Shown in pieces: positions 1-9,318 of a stretch of 64,000 nt of DNA. Source of the stretch: Selaginella moellendorffii (taxonomy: Eukaryota; Plantae; Lycopodiophyta). Numbering within the stretch: the stretch's first letter is position 1; the number at the start of each line of letters is the position of its first letter. The notes under the pieces are model-generated. The model searched no databases. It saw only the letters and a program-made list of their open reading frames with translations, and was not told the DNA's origin. The translations under genes were made by a program, and so were the position numbers. Location of the stretch: contig NW_003314263.1 in the NCBI RefSeq assembly GCF_000143415.4, positions 2,792,041-2,856,040 on the forward strand, given 5' to 3'.

Positions 1-1402
1 GGCTTCCTTTCATCTTTCCTGGCATGTTTAAGTCCGCTCGGCCGGAAGTGGTCCCCAGAATTATTGTAAAATGGGGACACTGGCATCGGTGAGTGCGAGG
101 CGCGGCTCGATGAGTTGAGTGGCGATTCGTCCGCCGAGATCGAGCACCCCGTCGCTGAGGAAACGATAAAAAAAGAAAGACAAAAACGAAAAAGCGATGA
201 GTCACTCCATTAACGTAACGCATGAGGCGGCAAGAATCTCGTGTGACAAGGATATGAAACTCACCCATGTTGTTATCCATGCTATTATCCATGAGATCTA
301 TGAGCTGCGATCATATCCAAACAAGAGCGCTCAGAAAATGGAATAGAAAAATTCTTTGCAAACCTTTGTCATCTCGAAAGTGGTCGCGAAGAGCTCGTCT
401 TCGTCAATGGGTGGTGGTGCCGGTGTGCATTGTTCATCGTTTCCTGTGAGAAAACCACAATTCGTTTCCAAATCAAACTCTAGAACACGAGGAAAAATAA
501 AAACTTGCAAGAGCAACTAGCAGACCTTGCACGTCGTCTAGACTTTTGGCCCATTCGTCGGCTACAGCCTTCCACGATCTGCAGTGAAAGAAACTTTGAT
601 CCATCATCCTCAACTCTTTGCTTGTCTTCTTTTTACCGGATAAGTTTCCTGGCGGCCGACTTTATTTGATCGCAGCCGTGTCTCCGCAGATTGTTCACAG
701 GCTTGCCAATCTCAGTCGCCTGGAAAACATATCAAAGAATAAAACAACCGCGTGAATCCCAAGAGCTTCTCGAATGAAAGAAAGAAAGAAAAAAATCCCC
801 CTAGTAACGAATTCTCTTGTTTACCTTCAGAGTCTCGATCGAGAGATTTAAATCTGTCAATCGCACAAGAAGTTCTAAAATGTCGTCATCGTTCTGTCAC
901 AAGGGAGACAACGCGTGAGGACAAAGGCAAAAAGAAAGAACAAGAAGAATGAAGAGAGAGAGAGAGAGAGAGGAGAGGAAAGAATGAAAAAAAATGGAGA
1001 GAAGAGGGAGAAGAAGAAATCCTTGCATACCTTATCAAGATCTACCAGCTCCTTTTTAATCTTGAAAACTTCCTTGACATCGCCCTCGCGATTCCCACTG
1101 CCCATGTCCATCACGGAATTCCCATACTCGTGATCGCACGCCGTGATGGCTGGAGAGATTTCGCTGTGGCGGCTCACCGATCCCCGTAGCACCGCGGCCT
1201 CCTCCTCCTCCTCCTCGATCGGCCCCGCCGGGCAAGCGATTTGCTGAAATAGCTTCTCGGCGATCCCATCGCGCCTCTCCCTAAGCTTGTCGGGGTAGTC
1301 CGCCGCCGCGATCGCGATGCCCCGGTCGATCACCGTCCAGAGATCGTGCTCCAAATCCCTGAAGAAAGATCGCCAAAACTCCAATTTCTCTCCTCCGCCC
1401 AT
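1..1402 (-). CDS. MED26-like / TFIIS N-terminal (LW) domain protein, multi-exon, 3' end runs off the window
   Basis: ATG at 1402. Exon 1 (1402-1031) encodes LEFWRSFFR...DLWTVIDRGIAIAAADYPDKLRERRDGIAEKLF. GT-AG spliced exons at 893-825 (NDDDILELLVRLTDLNLSIETLK), 719-~637 (ATEIGKPVNNLRRHGCDQIKSAARKLIR) and ~579-527 (SWKAVADEW) reconstruct the TFIIS-N domain typical of plant MED26 proteins. Confidence 0.85.
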
Positions 1403-1961
1403 GGCTAGAAAGAAATCCCAGAGGAGCTCCTCGCCCGAAACTTCCCCTCTGGAACAAGAAACCTTGCCCACCTTAGAACAGCGAGAATCTCCACTCACGA
1501 AAGAGGCCAGCGATTCCCCAGCTGGATCTCCGCATTTTCTCGATGCGATGCTCGCTCAATCAAATCCCTCGCAGACCTGACTCCTCGCGAGAGAATCCGT
1601 CACAGATTTCTCATTCTCCCGATACCTAAGCTAAGGATCGATCAGCAATCCAGGACTGACGCGACAAAGAGAGAGGGAAGAGGAAAGCTTCCTAGGGCTA
1701 ATGGAATTGTTCTTGATCCGACGGCCCAGCGCGCGTGGCGATTAGATCCGACGGTCCAGGACCAAATTGCTGACTAGTCAACGGAGAGCGGCGAATTTCC
1801 GCGTGTAGTGTTGAGCGCCACGTGAAGATATGGCAAAAACTCGTTTCGTTTGACGGGTTGCTAGGTAGGATTCGAACCATGGATTGGTCAACTCTCCATT
1901 GACCATAAGCCCTTAGGTCAACTCTTCGATAAGCCCTAAACCCTAGAGCAGGGTGGGGAGA
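1403..1961. promoter_or_regulatory. Probable bidirectional promoter with a telo-box
   Basis: About 560 bp separate the divergent ATGs. An AAACCCTA telo-box lies at ~1938-1945, just upstream of the tRNase Z ATG. Confidence 0.5.
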
Positions 1962-3382
1962 ATGGCGGGGAGGCGCCGCGCAATGGAGCTCGTGTTCCTC
2001 GGCACTGCGGCGAATCCATCCCCGCGGAGGAATTCTTCGTGTGTGCTGCTCAAAATAGGTGAGATTTCGAGCGCGAGCATTCTTTGTGTGAGATTTTGGT
2101 TTCTCAGGGAAGATTATGCAGCTATTCGACTGCGCCGAGGGATCGTTCCGGCAGCTGCAGGAATCGCGGCATTCCGGCAGCGCGATTGACAGGATCTTCA
2201 TCACGCATATGCACGGGGATCACGTAAGGATTTTGCCCGATTCGATTCGAGCAGCTCACTGTGACCTCTTTTTTCCTTCCTTTCTCTGTCGTGTAGGTCT
2301 GGGGACTTCCAGGTACGTTGTTCTTGGCGATTCGTTTTGCGATTCTTTACAGCATTTTGTTATTTGTTTTCTTTGTAGCATTGCTGTGTGCTGCCAAGTT
2401 TAGAGTCAATGCGGAGATTTATGGACCCCAAGGAATTCGCGACTGGCTGCGCATGAGCTTAAAGTCGTGCCGTGCCAAAGTTCCATCCAAGTACAAAGTC
2501 CATGAGCTCATCCTTACTCAGGTGTGCACGAGATCTCCAGATTTTGTTGTGATTCAAGCCTTTTTTCTTTTTTTTCTTCAGGAAAAGAGCTTGGAACGAG
2601 TTGCGTCCTTGCATGTCCCAGCTAATCCTCACGACGATGAATTACCGGGAAATGATATAAGCTGCTCTGGAGACGGTGTTTGGCATGTGTATGCAACCTT
2701 TTCAACTCTCTGTCGGCTTTTATTTTCTTTTGGTGATGCAGACTTCAAGACGAAACGCTTGACATCAAAGCTGGTTTGTTGACCCACAATGTTCCCTGTT
2801 GGGGATATGTGCTAACAGAAGTCAAGAGGTAGATGAGTTTTCTTACATTCTCCAAGTGACGTTCTTTCTTCTGTCAGCGAGGCGGAAAAAGAAAGCGCTG
2901 GCGAAACTACCAGAGGAAGCCGAAAAGTTGGTAAGTTCGTGTTATACACGAACTATACGAAGTTAAATTCTTTTGCAGTGATTCTTGGTGACACAGCCAA
3001 CTCAAAAGCTCTCACCACAGCAGGCAGAGATGCCGATGTTGTGGTGCACGAGGCAACACTTGGTAATTGTAACAAGGAAACTCACTCGACTCCAGGTAGT
3101 TCTTTCACTGTGTTTGTGGAGGTGAACAAACGTTTCCTTGCAGAAATGGCCGGAAGTTTTGCGAAATCTATTAATGCCAAGCTGCTGGTTCTAACACATT
3201 TGAACCGAAACGCTGTGAGTCTTCCCGGTTGCCTCTTCTGTATATTGTCTGAAACTTATTTTTGCATCCGCTTCTAGGGGACTTCAAAACTTCCTGCGAC
3301 GGCTTATCTTGATCCGGCCAAGCGTGCGTTTGGAAGGGACAGCGTTGTTCTGGCAGAGGATTTCCTCTCATTGAGCCTATGA
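1962..3382 (+). CDS. tRNase Z (short form)-like metallo-beta-lactamase, 10 exons, 303 aa
   Basis: Exons 1962-2058, 2108-2223, 2297-2312, 2379-2521, 2582-2688, 2742-2828, 2878-2930, 2979-3095, 3144-3214 and 3278-3382 splice in frame (912 nt, all GT-AG). Motifs: LVFLGT, PSPRRN, DCAEG, THMHGDH, IYGP, THNVPCWGY, ILGDT, HEAT, HST, LTH and C-terminal LAEDF. Confidence 0.9.
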
Positions 3383-5505
3383 TAGGCATGGAATCTAGCC
3401 GAGTGCGTGCTACTCCAGCAAAAGACGCTGCTAGCTTTCAAGGCACAAGCCTGTCAAGACTGCCAAGGAGGATAAGTACGTTGCTGGCGGAACTGAAGTC
3501 CGCGAGCAGCTCCGGGGACTTGAAGATGGGAAGGAGGCTTCATGCTGAGGCTGCCGAGAGCGGCGCCGACACACATATTTACGTAGCTAGCAGCCTGGTG
3601 AATATGTACGCGAAGTGTGGGAGCATGGAGACTGCTCGGAGTATTTTCGATAAGATGGTTCGGCACGATGTTGTCTCGTGGACTGCGCTGATACTCGGCT
3701 ACGCTCAGAATGGACAGGGGAAAGTAGCTCTCGAGCTGTTCGAGGCGATGCAGTTAACAGGCTGTGCTGCTAATGCTCAAGCCTTCGTAGCTGCGCTCAA
3801 AGCCTGCACAAGCCTCGCAGCAAACGAAGAAGCAAAGCAAGCTGATGGGAGGCCTGTGAAGATGGTATCTCTGGAGAAGGGAATCGCTCTTCACTCTCAG
3901 GCTGCCAGGCTCGGCTTCGACTCAGATATATTCGTGATCACGACTCTGGCAGATATGTACTCGAAGTGTGGGACGATGGACAATGCTCGTGAGGTGTTTG
4001 ACAGGAGTCCAAAGAAGAGCTCGGTGCTATACAACACGCTGATACTTGGATATGCACAGAACGGTCAAGGTAGGCTGGCTCTCGAGTTATTTTGCTACAT
4101 GTTGTCGTCTAAGGATTGCTTACCTGTTCGATCTACATTCCTCGCGGTACTCAAGGCCTGCACCGTTCTTGCTGACAAAGAAGCTGAAGGCATTCTCGGT
4201 GGCAAGGTCAGGAAAGTGGCTTCGCTCGAGATTGGGATGGCTATCCACGTACAGGCTTGGAGAAGCAGGCTTGAGCTGGACCTTTGCGTCGCAAGCTCTC
4301 TAGTCGACATGTACTGCAAGTGCCGGAGCCTGGGCGATGCGAGAAGGGTGTTTGACAGGATGAAGATCCACGACACTGTGTCGTGGAATTCGCTCATTCT
4401 CGGGTATGCACAGAATGGAGACGGTAAGACGGCGCTGAAACTATTCGAGACGATGCTCGCGGAAGGCTGCGTGCCCGTTCGCTCGAGCTTCCTAGCGGCA
4501 CTCGAAGCATGCAGTGCTTTCTCCGAGGAAGAAGAGTGCCAGTTCGTCAATGGAAAGGTGGCGAAGGTGGTCTCTCTGGAAACGGCTATGGCTATACACT
4601 CTCGAGTAGACGCCGAGGCAGCAAAACATGGCGTGGATATCATGGTGGCCAACACGCTGATCGACGTCTATGCGAAGTGTGGCAGCATGACTGACGCTCA
4701 AAGAGTCTTCGACGGTATGAAGCACCACAATCTGGTCTCTTGGACAGTTCTAATGTTTGGTTATGCGCAGAACGACAGGGCCAAGATGGTCTTGGAGGTC
4801 TTCTCGCAAATGCGGTACTTCGAAGAATGGATTCCAAGCTCCCAGGCTTTCGTAGCAGTGATCCAGGCAGCAGCAGACATGGCAGCCTTGGCAGCTGGAA
4901 AAAGAATCCACGGTGACGTTTGTAGGCTGGGACTGGAGCTGGAAGCTCACATACAAAGCAGCCTGGTGGATCTCTACGGGAAGTGTGGCAGCACAGTCGG
5001 CTCTCAGGTGGTTTTCGACTCGGCTTCGTCGAGAGGGATCGAGATGTGGAGTGCAGTCATGGCAGGACACAGCCGGCAGGGAGATCATTCAAGAGTTTTC
5101 GAGCTCTTCGAGGGGATGGTCCGAGCAGGAGTTCGTCCAAACGCCATCACTTTCCTGTCACTGCAAATCACTTGCAGCCGGGCCGGGCTGGTGGACAAGG
5201 CCTGGGAGATTTTCTCGGAGATGCAGAGCTCAAAGTTTGGGATCCGGCCAGGGATTGAGCACTACCACTGCTTGATCGATTTGCTGGGGCGCGCCAACCA
5301 GATCGACAAGGCGGTGGAGGTGGTGGAGAGCATGCCGGTGAAGGCCACGGCGGTGACTTGGATGACAGTGCTGGGTGCATGCCAGAAGTGGAAGAACTCG
5401 GAGATTGGAAAGAGGGCGTTTGATGCAGTGGTGAGGCTGGATCGCGAGAAAGAGCATCACGCGGCAGCCTACGTTCTCTTGGCTGAGATCTTCGAAGCAA
5501 ACTAA
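3379..5505 (+). CDS. Intronless PLS-class pentatricopeptide repeat protein with E domain, no DYW domain
   Basis: 708-aa ORF with repeated SSLVxMYxKCG...A..VFDxM...VSWxxLIxGYAQNG motifs and a C-terminal HYHCLIDLLGRA...W..VLGAC...AAYVLL E region. Alternative start at ATG 3388. Confidence 0.95.
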   Translation: MIGMESSRVRATPAKDAASFQGTSLSRLPRRISTLLAELKSASSSGDLKMGRRLHAEAAESGADTHIYVASSLVNMYAKCGSMETARSIFDKMVRHDVVSWTALILGYAQNGQGKVALELFEAMQLTGCAANAQAFVAALKACTSLAANEEAKQADGRPVKMVSLEKGIALHSQAARLGFDSDIFVITTLADMYSKCGTMDNAREVFDRSPKKSSVLYNTLILGYAQNGQGRLALELFCYMLSSKDCLPVRSTFLAVLKACTVLADKEAEGILGGKVRKVASLEIGMAIHVQAWRSRLELDLCVASSLVDMYCKCRSLGDARRVFDRMKIHDTVSWNSLILGYAQNGDGKTALKLFETMLAEGCVPVRSSFLAALEACSAFSEEEECQFVNGKVAKVVSLETAMAIHSRVDAEAAKHGVDIMVANTLIDVYAKCGSMTDAQRVFDGMKHHNLVSWTVLMFGYAQNDRAKMVLEVFSQMRYFEEWIPSSQAFVAVIQAAADMAALAAGKRIHGDVCRLGLELEAHIQSSLVDLYGKCGSTVGSQVVFDSASSRGIEMWSAVMAGHSRQGDHSRVFELFEGMVRAGVRPNAITFLSLQITCSRAGLVDKAWEIFSEMQSSKFGIRPGIEHYHCLIDLLGRANQIDKAVEVVESMPVKATAVTWMTVLGACQKWKNSEIGKRAFDAVVRLDREKEHHAAAYVLLAEIFEAN

Positions 5506-6126
5506 GAAGAATCATTCGATTATTATCAAAAGAAGAGTGGATCGAAACCTCAAGAAATTTAGTAGTGGTTTAACAATTCATGACCCTCTATATTAAATGC
5601 TGCTACAGTTATGTTTTATGTTTATACTTTCACCAAGTTTTTTTTCAGGTGTGTTTTTATAAATAAAGCAGTGATTTTGGATTTTGATCTTCATCTTATT
5701 ATTCTAAAATTATTTTCCAATTTAAAATAAAATTATAGTTAGAAGAGGTATTTTCTGTATTACTTCATAATCTCTATACAGGATAAATGATTTTTTTAGA
5801 GTATCAATTATAATAATTATGAGTGTTAAAATTTTATTTCCAGTAGGAGATTATATTTTGAATTTGCATTACGTTGAGTGAGAAGGACTCACCTTCAAAA
5901 TCGAGTGGGATAAAGGAAGGAATTTTAAGTCTACCAAAACATTTATTGCTAATCTTTATTAATAAAATTACTAAATAGGACTATTGGTATTATGAGGGCC
6001 AACAGCTACAATGCCGTATACTAATATTAATGTAGTAGGATTTTGGTAGCCGTCAGATTAGTTTCAATCCAGACCACTCGTTCTTATATATAAACTAGGG
6101 TTTCTTGGGCTAATTGAGGACAATTC

Positions 6127-6890
6127 ATTACATTTCTCTCAGCTCAAAGGTCCAAAGGTCCTATTTGACAAGTTGGAGCTTGCCTTGTTAGCCAAGACTA
6201 CATCATCTTGGGTATGAAACATTTCTCTTCCCATTTTCTCGAGTTTTTCCCACTAATGCTGGACTCTCCAGGCATTGGCTACAACAGCTTTCCTTGAGGT
6301 TGCTCCGACGATAAGCTTCCCTGGGCCAAAGTAAGCTCCATTCCATGTATTTTACTCTCGAGATTCACTTGGACCCTCTTTGCAGAAATCACGGGACAGT
6401 GACTTGCTCAAGACCAAATACCCGTAAGTCGTTTTCTCATTTGTTTATTCCGATTTCCTTCGTCTTTCTTCGTATCTTTCCTGATTTGACAACATCATTG
6501 TTGTTATCTCTTTGCAGATACATATGCCATGCGGAAGTGAATGCCATCCTGAACAGGAATCACACCTCAACATCCGGTCAGGTACTCATCAAATTCATGC
6601 CATGTTGAAAGCTCTCCCTTCACCTGGATCTTCGTTTAGAGGCTCTACGTGACCATGTTCCCGTGCAACGAGTGTGCCAAAGTCATAATCCAGGTACTGA
6701 AATCTTATCACCCTTCAATTAAACTTCTTGTTTCTCTTTTCAGTCACGCAAGCTGCTGTCCATGGCCAATGTTAAGGTAAGAAAGATCCTCCAAGTCTCT
6801 GGAAACTGGAGAAATCACAGAAGAACTCTTGTGTCTTTATAGCTCCGACAGCACCAGCCCAAAGCAAAGTCCATCATTCTCGAGTTTTAA
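6127..6890 (+). pseudogene. dCMP deaminase pseudogene
   Basis: Spliced fragments read FLSAQRSKGPI*QVGACLV, IGYNSFP*GCSDDKLPWAK, YICHAEVNAILN, RLYVTMFPCNECAKVIIQ and SRKLLSMANVK (HxE/PCxxC Zn site). In-frame TGA at 6166 and 6295. The 5' end and an internal segment are missing. Confidence 0.85.
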
Positions 6891-7641
6891 GCAAGAGTGA
6901 ACTTCCGTACATATATATACACTAGACAAGTAAGAACAAGGAGATCACTCTCAGTTCGAGTTACGTTAGACTTACAGATCACTCTAACGTAATAGCTATT
7001 GACACTAAGAAGTTTTGCAGTCCAAAATGTTATTTTTTACCATTAAATATTTCCCTTTAAAACATTTATGATTTATATGGAATAATGTATATAATTGTTA
7101 AAAGTTTTAGGCAGAATACAGAATCTTAATATGTGAATAAGGAAAAAATGACAAATTAAAATATCTGTTAAAATAATATATTTAATGAATATAATATAAA
7201 ACATATGCTGATTTAAAAAATCCCTTTGAAGTTCTAAAATTAAAAATAGGCTTTTAAAACATTATAAATTTACTCTCATTCACATAATTTAAAATTAAAT
7301 TTAAAATAAAATAGAATAATATCTATCTCAAGTTTCAAACAAAATCTTGTAAAAAAAGACCTAGATGACAACTGTTGGTGTCCACTTGAACTTAAATTTG
7401 GAACAATAAAATCATCTCACTCAAATCATCATCTCATAAGGAGGTTCACAAATATGTCTTAGAATTGATCCCAGAACATGACCAAATTATAAAACGGAAA
7501 TACACTTTTAGTATTTAATGACAAAAAGTTTCAAACTGGTAGATTATGGAAAACCATGTCTTTTAACATGTCTTTCTGTCAACCTAACTTCTCAAAAAAG
7601 TAGTTGTCGACTTCACAGTGGTTCTTTCCAGCTCTCTGTCA

Positions 7642-9318
7642 ATGAATTTGTTTGACAATGGGGAACGCACTTGATTGTCAGCAGTTTCTCAATACGGCCT
7701 TATGGGATGGACACTTGGCTCAACATTGGCTTTGTCATTCTCCAGTTCAGATCATCCGATTCATTCCATGTTGTTAAAATTTTTGCAGATTGCTCAAATT
7801 CTGCTCACAATTCCCTTTTCTTATGCACAAGCAGGCCTGCCCTCCTCAATAGCATTTCAGGTCTGGTGGGGAGGCTACATGATTAACATTCTCTACTTGA
7901 CGTATTGAGAGAAGCACAACCTTCCGCTCGCACACAACCGAAAGTGCAATACTCAGGTAGATTCTACTTCTAGTACTAAATTGGTGATATGTTTTCTTCT
8001 TTTGCAGCTGCATGAGGTGTTGGGTGGGCTTCTAGGCAAATGGTGGAGTGTGGCAACTCTTGTCGTGATGGTGCCGTTTTTGTTCGTTGTGTGTGTTATT
8101 GAGCTTTCTGGCTGTAGCAAGTAAGTGATTTATTTTTGTCTTTGCCTTATTCTGCTTATAACTTGCAGTATGTCAATATGGCAGCATTGTCTTCGAAATA
8201 AATGATCAATTTCCGAAAAGAACATGGACTGTGATATTTGGCGCCCTCTTCTCCCTGTCCATTATTATGCCATCCGCTCAAAACTACAGAGCTTGGTCTT
8301 TTGTGGGCGTCATTGCGACTGTATATACTTCATGTTACCAGGTAACATGAAGTATGGGGGGTTGCAGCACTATTCCATGGAAAGGCAAGTGTTTCTATAT
8401 TCTCATTCAGTACTAGCTAGTATCATCACCTTCGTCGTGCAGGTCTCAGATGTTCAGTCTCTTGCTCCCCGTGGCTATACAGGATATTTTAGTGCTCTCA
8501 GCAATTTTTTGGCAGTTGGAACAGAGATAATACCTGTGTAAGTATTTTTGAAGCGATTTATAGAACTTTAAACTTCGATTTTCCAGGGAACTCATGGACG
8601 CAATGTGGAAACCGGAAGACTTCAAAATTCCCTGGTTTTATGGTACGATTTATGTTTGTATGGTGACTATGCCAGCAAGCATGACTGTCTATGGGATTTT
8701 TGGCGCCGAGACGTTGGTACATCCGTCTGCTTTGATGTTGTTTCCAAAATCAAAGTTTCGGGACATTGCAATAGTTTTGATGCTTTTGCACCAGGCAAGC
8801 TTTTATAGTAAAATTTCCGTCTCGATATGGACCTGACAAGCTGTTGTCTGCAGTTCATCGTGTTTGGGATTCTGAGCTCGCCACTCTACTTGTTCTGCGA
8901 AAAGTTCTTCCGGGTCCACAACTCAAAGGAGAACTTTGGTGAGAGTACCTGTGTTTCTAGCAATCTGGCTAGCCACTCTTGCATTCCCATTCCTTCAAGT
9001 CGCAGCGGCTACTGCCATTTTCGGCATATTTGTCATTCCTTGCACTGCCTACATTGTGATATTCTGGGAGAAAGCTTTGAGTGATGTAAGTTAAGACTGC
9101 TTCCTGCGGCACAATTTCTCATTCTTACTCCAGGTGCTCCAACCTGCCTTTCCAAAGTTGAGCTGGGAAACAACCTTCAGCGTCAACCTGAGGATCATAA
9201 TCTGGATGGCAGCGATGAGTGGACTCGGACTATGGCCAGCATAGCAGCCTACTCCCGACAAGCTGGGGAAGTCGGCTTATTCACAAAATGTTACATGTGC
9301 AAGTCAGATGTACGATAA
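7642..9318 (+). pseudogene. Divergent AUX1/LAX-like permease, copy 1 (pseudogene)
   Basis: Same exons as the intact copy at 41651-43392, but with frameshifts and deletions in exons 1, 2 and 7 and an in-frame TGA in exon 2. Confidence 0.85.

Follow-up and report, generated by a model that had tools for sequence, protein, structure and literature searches.

Land-plant nuclear genes are, to our knowledge, taken as monocistronic with very few exceptions. How, then, are two genes expressed when the stop codon of the first overlaps the start codon of the second? This question is raised by a locus in a 64,000-nt stretch of Selaginella moellendorffii DNA (contig NW_003314263.1, positions 2,792,041 to 2,856,040 of the forward strand; hereafter the window), in which a tRNase ZS-like gene is followed on the same strand by a PPR ORF (Table 1). 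The two genes are full-size, expressed and selectively kept; their zero spacing leaves a terminator, a promoter or UTRs no place at the junction, which mature RNA is seen to cross. There are two readings: promoters of this compact genome are routinely located within the coding exons of neighbours, or a second long ORF is translated from a dicistronic mRNA in a vascular plant. Both bear on the spread and expression of the very large PPR family of Selaginella. The locus is small, has allelic markers in both genes and would be a clean test case. A literature search on polycistronic, bicistronic and Iso-Seq work in Selaginella found no paper on the locus and, for the species, neither long-read nor CAGE data.

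Table 1. Features of the tRNase ZS-like/PPR locus (positions in the window)
Feature	Position	Strand	Description and evidence
Gap, presumed bidirectional promoter	1698-1956	.	Separates the tRNase Z-like gene from the divergent Med26-domain gene on the - strand; NCBI gene calls
tRNase ZS-like metallo-beta-lactamase gene	1962-3382	+	10 exons, 303 aa; splice sites read, Pfam, RNA contigs, NCBI model
tRNase Z-like exons 1 to 5	1962-2058, 2108-2223, 2297-2312, 2379-2521, 2582-2688		2297-2312 is a 16-nt micro-exon
tRNase Z-like exons 6 to 10	2742-2828, 2878-2930, 2979-3095, 3144-3214, 3278-3382
ATG-free stretch	3177-3378	+	202 nt; exon 9 end, intron 9 and exon 10; candidate 5' leader/nested promoter region
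ATGA	3379-3382	+	PPR start codon 3379-3381 overlaps the tRNase Z-like stop TGA 3380-3382
Second in-frame PPR ATG	3388-3390	+	5 nt past the TGA; G at -3, G at +4
PLS-class PPR ORF	3379-5505	+	Intronless, 708 aa/codons; Pfam, paralogues, haplotypes, RNA contigs
Optional intron	4070-4155	+	86 nt, GT..AG; one run; used by XP_024519137.1 (455 aa)
Optional intron ("exitron")	4715-4770	+	56 nt, GT..AG; joint in 4/4 runs alongside the unspliced form
AT-rich 3' region	5552-5667	+	AAGAAA 5552, ATTAAA 5592, TATAAA 5658, AATAAA 5662

The junction of the two genes

A first-pass annotation of the window had described a tRNase Z stop codon overlapping the first PPR ATG, with the next ATG at 3388. Both are read directly in the sequence: the last tRNase Z-like exon reads ...VVLAEDFLSLSL, followed by the TGA at 3380-3382 and by a TAG at 3383-3385, and the initiation context of the second ATG is better than that of the first. 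The PPR frame is, as was also stated there, open back to 3313, an in-frame TGA lying just upstream at 3310-3312. Conservation of the overlap in the other haplotype had been proposed as a check; when it was run, the sequence of that haplotype (GL377609.1) was letter-for-letter identical over 3229-3560, the junction included. That two expressed genes on the same strand lie with zero spacing is clearly non-random; a single ATGA overlap admits no meaningful chance figure.

The spliced RNA has 18 AUGs ahead of the PPR AUG, which exclude leaky scanning from the cap, and its first ORF (ORF1) is 909 nt long. Nothing was found at the junction that resembles an IRES, a structured element or a known RNA family: the RNA fold was unremarkable (z = -1.13), an Rfam search of 1500-6300 gave no match, and a tRNA search of 1-8000 gave none. 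A single UGGGA 5-mer, for which the chance expectation is about 1 in 6, is formed where exons 9 and 10 are joined, about 105 nt upstream. The ATG-free stretch contains a TATA-like hexamer (TATATT) at 3241. At least 200 nt of ATG-free upstream sequence is seen at only 1.8% of the window positions; this is one observation, at roughly the 2% level, and coding sequence of the upstream gene makes up half of the stretch.

The upstream gene

All nine introns of the upstream gene are missing from the RNA contigs of four runs from four studies, and the NCBI model has the same span (1421 nt) and the same product length (303 aa). The motif set comprises HxHxDH, GDT, HEAT, HST and a C-terminal His. HxHxDH (metallo-beta-lactamase motif II) is present as HMHGDH in exon 2 (38 aa), which gave Pfam matches to Lactamase_B_2 and tRNase Z (Lactamase_B_4), all below the gathering score, and aligned with residues 32-65 of ELAC1, 36-70 of E. 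coli RNase Z and 34-68 of B. subtilis RNase Z, and also with ELAC2. Exon 8 (ILGDT...VVVHEATL) carries GDT, with the motif IV Asp, as well as HEAT, and aligned with residues 210-236 of B. subtilis RNase Z and 636-663 of ELAC2; the E values were only 0.16-0.22 because this exon comprises 38 aa. PDB sequence searches with exons 6 and 10 gave chance matches only, and so the C-terminal exon is placed by the RNA splice and the NCBI model, not by homology. By exon count, about 36 residues separate the motif III His from the motif IV Asp, compared to about 71 in B. subtilis RNase Z, where the latter is Asp211 in the exon 8 alignment and the former is His140.

Judging from its sequence, the protein seems to be without the tRNA-binding arm. 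Many plant TLPs lack this flexible arm, the exosite that holds pre-tRNA (PMC3161902). The same paper lists a 303-aa "tRNase ZS-like" protein of S. moellendorffii, SmoTLP1; the motif content fits the upstream gene, and on the grounds of length and species the upstream protein is probably SmoTLP1. The authors of that paper expected TLPs of the SmoTLP1 class to be without tRNase Z (pre-tRNA 3' endonuclease) activity. The original label "tRNase Z" needs to be softened to tRNase ZS-like.

The PPR ORF

The product of the PPR ORF has an N-terminus that resembles a presequence, followed by 11 or more PPR motifs and, at the C-terminus, a partial E motif with no DYW. Pfam matched PPR in 11 stretches (E = 3.3e-70) and PPR_2 (E = 3.9e-66); the E motif scored 16 bits against a cutoff of 27.3 (E = 0.013), and the DYW domain (PF14432) was not found by Pfam in the ORF. 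The C-terminal E1/E2/DYW editing domains are absent as a full set, and the ORF stops within the E1-like region. The best relatives are all Selaginella PPR proteins of the PLS/E/DYW type, the closest paralogues being 43-48% identical, and an exact look-up of the 708-aa product found it not on record.

The ORF is intact in both haplotypes, with a pN/pS of 0.37 (binomial P = 0.035) that indicates mild constraint. Of 18 allelic differences, 17 fall in its last third, and all 10 that are non-synonymous are among these; the first 445 codons carry no non-synonymous change. By sequence comparison the ORF is old, and its age, its integrity in both haplotypes and its pN/pS make it very likely that it is translated. 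A recent retrocopy or pseudogene is rejected in view of the distance of the nearest paralogue and the intactness of both alleles.

The gene models differ between the haplotypes: RefSeq gives 455 aa on this one (XP_024519137.1) versus 705 aa on the other (XP_024541107.1, starting at the ATG at 3388). The 455-aa model starts at an out-of-frame ATG at 4052 and looks wrong. Removal of 4715-4770 was computed to shift the frame, leaving 445 PPR residues and a 48-aa tail that ends at a stop at 4914-4916.

RNA across the junction

In each of the four runs, one contig that lacks every tRNase Z-like intron extends without a break over 3278-4714, reaching 1.3 kb into the PPR ORF, and the contigs cover the ORF up to ends at 5598-5629. 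DNA contamination does not account for this contiguity, as the contigs are without the nine introns and none of them covers any intron or the gap at 1698-1956, which is covered by no contig in any of the four runs. The tRNase Z-like and PPR genes share or overlap a transcript. The first-pass annotation had offered a bicistronic mRNA or overlapping transcripts; that RNA crosses the junction is borne out in all four studies, but the contigs cannot tell which of the two it is, as they merge overlapping transcripts, represent one long molecule and two overlapping ones alike, and do not show starts or ends. Adapter-flanked contig ends were seen at 1645 and 1957 in run X1, and none near 3200-3400 was among the ends listed for that run. 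Within the upstream gene the contigs showed no 5' end, and none of them keeps intron 9.

The hexamers of the AT-rich 3' region are the first of poly(A) type past the tRNase Z-like stop. No AATAAA-type hexamer or AT-rich stretch occurs in 3383-5505, as against six hexamers in 5506-5900, and the GC fraction is about 0.55 across both ORFs and about 0.27 beyond 5505. With no terminator-like sequence before the PPR stop and with RNA crossing the TGA, the tRNase Z-like mRNA most likely carries the whole PPR ORF on its 3' side, and would then be an RNA of dicistronic format.

Expression of the PPR protein

We give an even chance to the reading that the PPR protein is translated mainly from a nested start in the 202-nt ATG-free stretch, the two zero-spacer genes of a very compact genome sharing or overlapping one transcription unit. 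Two steps are observed: transcription from about 1957, with nine introns removed and the mature RNA crossing the TGA into the PPR ORF, and the ending of the contigs at the sole terminator-like sequence, after the PPR stop. The PPR mRNA itself would be a shorter nested transcript that begins within the final ~200 nt of the upstream gene, around exon 10, and ends where the long RNA ends, and ribosomes would scan its AUG-free leader to the AUG at 3379 or to the better-placed one at 3388. As the reading frames differ and a fusion splice was not seen, two separate proteins are expected: a tRNase ZS-like hydrolase, presumably arm-less and nucleo-cytosolic, and a PLS-class PPR protein targeted to an organelle. 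The nuclease-like protein is without a presequence and the PPR protein has one, which suggests different compartments.

It is possible, though somewhat doubtful, that the long RNA from 1957 to about 5600 is the only one, and that ribosomes terminate at the UGA at 3380-3382 and reinitiate at the AUG at 3379 or 3388. The geometry of the ATGA and of the second ATG just past the stop is ideal for termination-reinitiation, the spliced RNA is contiguous over a junction that is identical in both haplotypes, the tRNase Z-like gene has no terminator-like sequence of its own, and a PPR ORF that is kept intact must be translated somehow. Some green-algal bicistronic loci, including ones of Auxenochlorella, likewise have an ORF1 stop overlapping the ORF2 start (PMC11291117). 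However, the efficiency of reinitiation declines as the upstream ORF lengthens (PMC11291117), and ORF1 is long here; the junction has no special RNA structure and no Rfam element, and the UGGGA-type motif amounts to one 5-mer at chance level. In addition, the first stop lies 2.1 kb ahead of the poly(A) site and optional introns follow it, so that the RNA would be expected to be an NMD target, as are the Arabidopsis read-through RNAs (PMC9768141). We regard as doubtful the broader proposal that PPR genes in spikemoss are downstream cistrons of unrelated host genes, reinitiating at AUGA/UGAUG after a full-length ORF (here 303 codons). If true, it would stand as the first instance in a vascular plant of cellular, non-viral termination-reinitiation after a long ORF, and would offer a route for new PPR copies to become expressed without a promoter.

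We consider it unlikely that the mRNAs are independent and monocistronic, with a non-canonical tRNase Z-like poly(A) site within the 5' part of the PPR ORF, a PPR start within the upstream gene, the contig a product of assembly merging and a long RNA of dicistronic format absent at any meaningful level. Same-strand transcripts that overlap by at least 31 nt are assembled as one contig, and a contig over two genes shows no single transcript. The poly(A) signals of plants are loose. Against this reading, 3383-5505 holds no AATAAA-like hexamer and no AT-rich stretch, and no A-tailed loose end in this interval is among the ends listed.

It is very improbable that the PPR ORF rides untranslated in the 3' UTR of the tRNase Z-like mRNA as a decaying or silent copy. 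All four runs contain an appreciable fraction of RNA from which the frameshifting 56-nt intron has been removed, one run shows removal of the 86-nt intron, and the allelic differences cluster in the last third, as a decaying copy might have it; but a 708-codon ORF so distant from its nearest paralogue is intact in both haplotypes, its 11 PPR motifs match at E = 3e-70, its pN/pS is 0.37, and its first 445 codons are without non-synonymous change.

The suggestion of the first-pass annotation that a splice from the exon 9 donor to the CAG at 3340-3342 (3214>3343) would yield a PPR-guided beta-lactamase-fold nuclease is hardly credible and we reject it: the frame arithmetic is correct, the phase-0 end of exon 9 being joined to a PPR-frame position at 3343, and the apparent lack of the tRNA-binding arm makes a borrowed RNA-binding module a tidy idea, but the joint, looked for in the contigs of four runs, is absent and 3214>3278 is the only splice seen, the fusion would bury the PPR presequence, the metallo-beta-lactamase Pfam domain is found in 0 of the 120 best PPR relatives, and no pyrimidine tract precedes the CAG.

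Comparison with known systems

PRORP and the PPR-SMR fusions resemble this case in pairing a PPR array with a nuclease-type domain at one locus; here, in contrast, the ORFs are in different frames, a TGA and a TAG stand between them, and no RNA joins them in frame. The locus is not a member of the PPR-nuclease fusions.

The calicivirus and influenza B systems depend on an 18S-rRNA-binding element upstream (TURBS, with a UGGGA core) that is held in a defined structure, whereas the spikemoss junction has one chance-level UGGGA and no unusual folding. The likeness to viral termination-reinitiation (calicivirus VP1/VP2, influenza B M1/BM2) lies in the AUGA-type overlap after a long upstream ORF. 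A review of such viral systems (PMC10275272) is cited in PMC11291117.

The green-algal bicistronic loci of Chlamydomonas and Auxenochlorella (PMC11291117 and its reference 27) share with this locus the nuclear setting, the green lineage, two unrelated ORFs and a very short inter-ORF distance; as to the likeness of a single mature mRNA, it comes here from contigs, which merge overlapping transcripts. In the algae, ORF1 has few AUGs, a weak Kozak context and a small size (median 291 nt in Auxenochlorella), permitting leaky scanning to ORF2, in contrast to the long, AUG-rich ORF1 found here. For the algal loci, Iso-Seq established that expression is exclusively dicistronic, whereas the present locus is known from contigs.

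Polycistronic read-through in Arabidopsis (271 loci; PMC9768141) is similar in that the polymerase enters a same-strand second gene after weak termination of the first and in that the first stop codon is far from the poly(A) site. In Arabidopsis, gene 1 is followed by a poly(A) site of its own and by a spacer, whereas here there is neither a spacer nor a gene 1 terminator-like sequence. The Arabidopsis read-through RNAs are minor, are NMD targets, and their second ORFs are rarely translated (PMC9768141).

The conserved CDC26-TTM3 bicistronic transcript of land plants (cited in PMC11291117 as its reference 11) likewise comes from a nuclear locus encoding two unrelated proteins. The upstream ORF of the present locus differs in encoding a full-size enzyme. 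CDC26 is a very small upstream ORF.

In the reading that we favour, with a nested start for the PPR mRNA, the ATGA overlap would be the extreme of a genome-wide packing of genes and not a coupling device. Other PPR loci of this genome have same-strand CDS-CDS gaps of 48, 94, 236, 273 and 342 nt and a divergent gap of 63 nt, several of them without a terminator-like sequence; given such tight gaps, overlapping transcripts look normal in this genome.

Structure of the stop/start junction

The window is identical to S. moellendorffii scaffold GL377567.1. The ten exons of the tRNase Z-like gene (see the table) have a coding length of 909 nt (303 aa), and the NCBI annotation of both haplotypes contains a 303-aa gene of exactly this span. 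Exon 10 ends with ...VVLAEDFLSLSL, followed by TGA (3380–3382) and TAG (3383–3385), and the four letters ATGA at 3379–3382 hold both the start codon of the PPR ORF and the stop codon of the tRNase Z-like gene. A second in-frame ATG of the PPR ORF is located at 3388, and its frame is open upstream as far as 3313. Direct reading of the sequence showed that all of the junction coordinates in the first-pass annotation were correct, and the overlap, whose conservation it had suggested examining, is retained in the other haplotype, where GL377609.1 is identical over 3229–3560.

Exon 3, a micro-exon of 16 nt between introns of 73 and 66 nt, encodes VWGLP and contributes one base to the codon that follows. 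It is present in mature RNA in all four placed runs, where the 2225>2377 joint shows it as 12 'letters between'.

Features of the tRNase Z-like/PPR locus and gaps at other PPR-bearing DNA (L004, L006) of the genome
Feature	Position	Strand or orientation	Remark
tRNase Z-like gene, ten exons	1962–3382	+	Splice sites read directly from the sequence
Exons 1–5 of the tRNase Z-like gene	1962–2058, 2108–2223, 2297–2312, 2379–2521, 2582–2688	+	
Exons 6–10 of the tRNase Z-like gene	2742–2828, 2878–2930, 2979–3095, 3144–3214, 3278–3382	+	
PPR ORF, 708 codons	3379–5505	+	First ATG 3379–3381
Optional GT..AG intron ('exitron'), 86 nt	4070–4155		Inside PPR ORF; in one run
Optional GT..AG intron ('exitron'), 56 nt	4715–4770		Inside PPR ORF; removed in 4/4 runs beside the unspliced form
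48-nt gap, PPR stop to CRR7 start	L004 10716–10763	Same-strand	GC 0.69
94-nt gap, PPR to PPR	L006 7830–7923	Same-strand	Ends in splice-acceptor-like TCTCTAG/CAG
63-nt gap	L004 2761–2822	Divergent	One divergent gap

Identity of the upstream protein

The tRNase Z-like model was searched one exon at a time. Exon 2, which contains HMHGDH, gave sub-threshold matches to both Pfam Lactamase_B_2 and tRNase Z and can be aligned to ELAC1, ELAC2, and bacterial RNase Z, and exon 8 (GDT...HEAT) aligned to residues 210–236 of B. subtilis RNase Z. Among the plant tRNase Z genes surveyed in PMC3161902 is one for a 303-aa 'tRNase ZS-like' protein of S. moellendorffii, SmoTLP1; according to this survey, many proteins of this type are without the flexible arm that binds tRNA and are probably inactive as tRNase Z. 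By exon count, only ~36 residues separate the motif III His from the motif IV Asp, a spacing that would fit a missing flexible arm. With only seven residues ahead of the conserved MELVFLGT start, the protein has no organelle presequence. The second in-frame AUG (1983) corresponds to the start of bacterial RNase Z.

RNA across the junction

A run search found about 20 runs from nine studies in which about three quarters of the sequence words from 1900–5700 occur, as expected of spliced RNA. Four runs from four studies were placed on 1500–6200. All consist of assembled contigs, which prove neither a single molecule nor a transcript start or end. In every run, one contig is spliced at all introns within its extent, and removal of each of the nine introns is seen in at least two runs; no contig in the four runs covers an intron or 1698–1956, and the contigs are therefore derived from RNA and not from DNA. 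The final splice of the tRNase Z-like gene is 3214>3278 in all four runs, and the same contig continues unbroken over 3278–4714, through the ATGA and the first 1.3 kb of the PPR ORF, which further contigs cover as far as 5598–5629. The mature RNA, as contigs, is thus contiguous over the junction of two expressed genes with zero spacer. As far as assembled contigs can show, this supports the bicistronic or overlapping transcripts that the first-pass annotation had proposed; no long-read, CAGE, or ribosome data were found in the literature on S. moellendorffii. We infer that the PPR ORF is carried as the 3′ part of the tRNase Z-like mRNA.

In run X1, a contig starts at 1957 with adapter sequence directly adjoining, which suggests a transcript 5′ end five nucleotides ahead of the first ATG; the 5′ leader would therefore be only 5 nt. 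Adapter-flanked X1 contig ends at 1645 and 1957 lie on either side of an untranscribed stretch of ~310 bp that separates a Med26-domain gene on the minus strand from the tRNase Z-like gene and is likely a bidirectional promoter. Run X9 contained a second contig whose five variant letters in 5379–5466 match the other haplotype exactly, and both PPR alleles are therefore expressed in this sample.

The PPR ORF is intronless except for two optional introns, both of which shift the frame. Removal of the 56-nt intron leaves 445 PPR residues with a 48-aa tail (stop at 4914). The RefSeq model of the window haplotype, XP_024519137.1 (4052–5505, 455 aa), begins at the out-of-frame ATG 4052 and regains the PPR frame through the 86-nt intron; it looks like an annotation artefact. 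For the other haplotype, RefSeq has a 705-aa model (XP_024541107.1) whose start codon corresponds to ATG 3388.

The PPR protein

Pfam detected 11 PPR motifs (E=3e-70) and a sub-threshold partial E motif but no DYW domain in the PPR ORF, whose predicted product is a PLS-class PPR protein. Its first 45 residues (Arg+Lys 7, Asp+Glu 3, Ser+Thr 13) look like a presequence. The closest relatives are Selaginella paralogues with only 43–48% identity, and the ORF is therefore not a recent copy. It is open in both alleles, which differ at 18 positions (8 synonymous and 10 non-synonymous; pN/pS 0.37, binomial P against neutrality 0.035 for the two haplotypes), and the first 445 codons contain a single difference, which is synonymous. 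These allelic data and the age of the ORF indicate that the PPR protein is very likely made.

Packing at other PPR loci

At four other PPR loci of the genome, the same-strand CDS-to-CDS gaps were 342, 273, 236, 94, and 48 nt. Neither the 48-nt nor the 94-nt gap is AT-rich or contains a terminator-like hexamer, and these two and the 63-nt divergent gap are too small for separate UTRs and promoters. Dense packing, in which transcripts must overlap, is therefore normal in this genome, and the zero gap of the tRNase Z-like/PPR pair is the extreme of the sampled range.

Translation of the PPR ORF

The spliced upstream mRNA has 18 AUGs ahead of the PPR AUG, which exclude leaky scanning. The 202 nt directly ahead of 3379 contain no ATG in any frame, which is true of only 1.8% of window positions and is precisely what a scanned leader would require. 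The context of ATG 3379 is weak (C at −3, A at +4) and that of ATG 3388 is strong (G at −3, G at +4). AATAAA-type hexamers number zero in 3383–5505 versus six in 5506–5900, with ATTAAA at 5592 just upstream of the contig ends, and GC stays at ~0.55 across both ORFs and falls to ~0.27 beyond 5505. Terminator-like sequence is therefore lacking at the end of the upstream gene and first occurs past the PPR stop.

PPR translation would be served by a nested start site within the final ~200 nt of the tRNase Z-like gene, a route to which we give about an even chance. It is favoured by the AUG-free stretch and the strong context at 3388, by the continuum of gap sizes, by the generally low efficiency of reinitiation after long ORFs (PMC11291117), and by the rare translation of ORF2 on Arabidopsis read-through RNAs (PMC9768141). 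Termination-reinitiation at the ATGA, a possible but clearly less probable source of the PPR protein, is favoured by the ideal geometry of the stop and start codons and by RNA that spans the junction unbroken; however, ORF1 is long and no supporting RNA element accompanies it. Folding of the junction is unremarkable (z=−1.13), and no Rfam family or tRNA was found there; a single UGGGA, formed by the exon 9/10 join ~105 nt upstream, is roughly at chance level. The two RNAs may be monocistronic and merely overlapping, since contigs merge transcripts that overlap, but the PPR ORF contains no poly(A)-type sequence, which makes this improbable. That the PPR ORF is an untranslated passenger would agree with its frameshifting optional introns and is very unlikely for an ORF that is old, intact, and constrained. 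The fusion isoform of the first-pass annotation can practically be dismissed: the frame arithmetic works, but the 3214>3343 joint was absent from all four runs.

Relation to known systems

The locus belongs with the known read-through or dicistronic-format nuclear transcripts of the green lineage, and is not a fusion of the PRORP or PPR-SMR type. It shares overlapping stop and start codons with some green-algal bicistronic loci but, unlike them, does not permit leaky scanning, and it resembles Arabidopsis read-through RNAs but has no spacer or terminator of the Arabidopsis type. A genuine coupled dicistron, which has a minority chance here, would be a novelty among vascular plants.

Allelic differences along the PPR ORF

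Compared with L002 5992–8118, the allelic differences of the PPR ORF are distributed very unevenly, with one in 3379–4714 (1336 nt) versus 17 in 4715–5505 (791 nt). The last third of the ORF contains every one of the 10 non-synonymous changes. The density switches at the position of the 56-nt exitron. This pattern could reflect selection, a boundary between haplotype blocks, or gene conversion.
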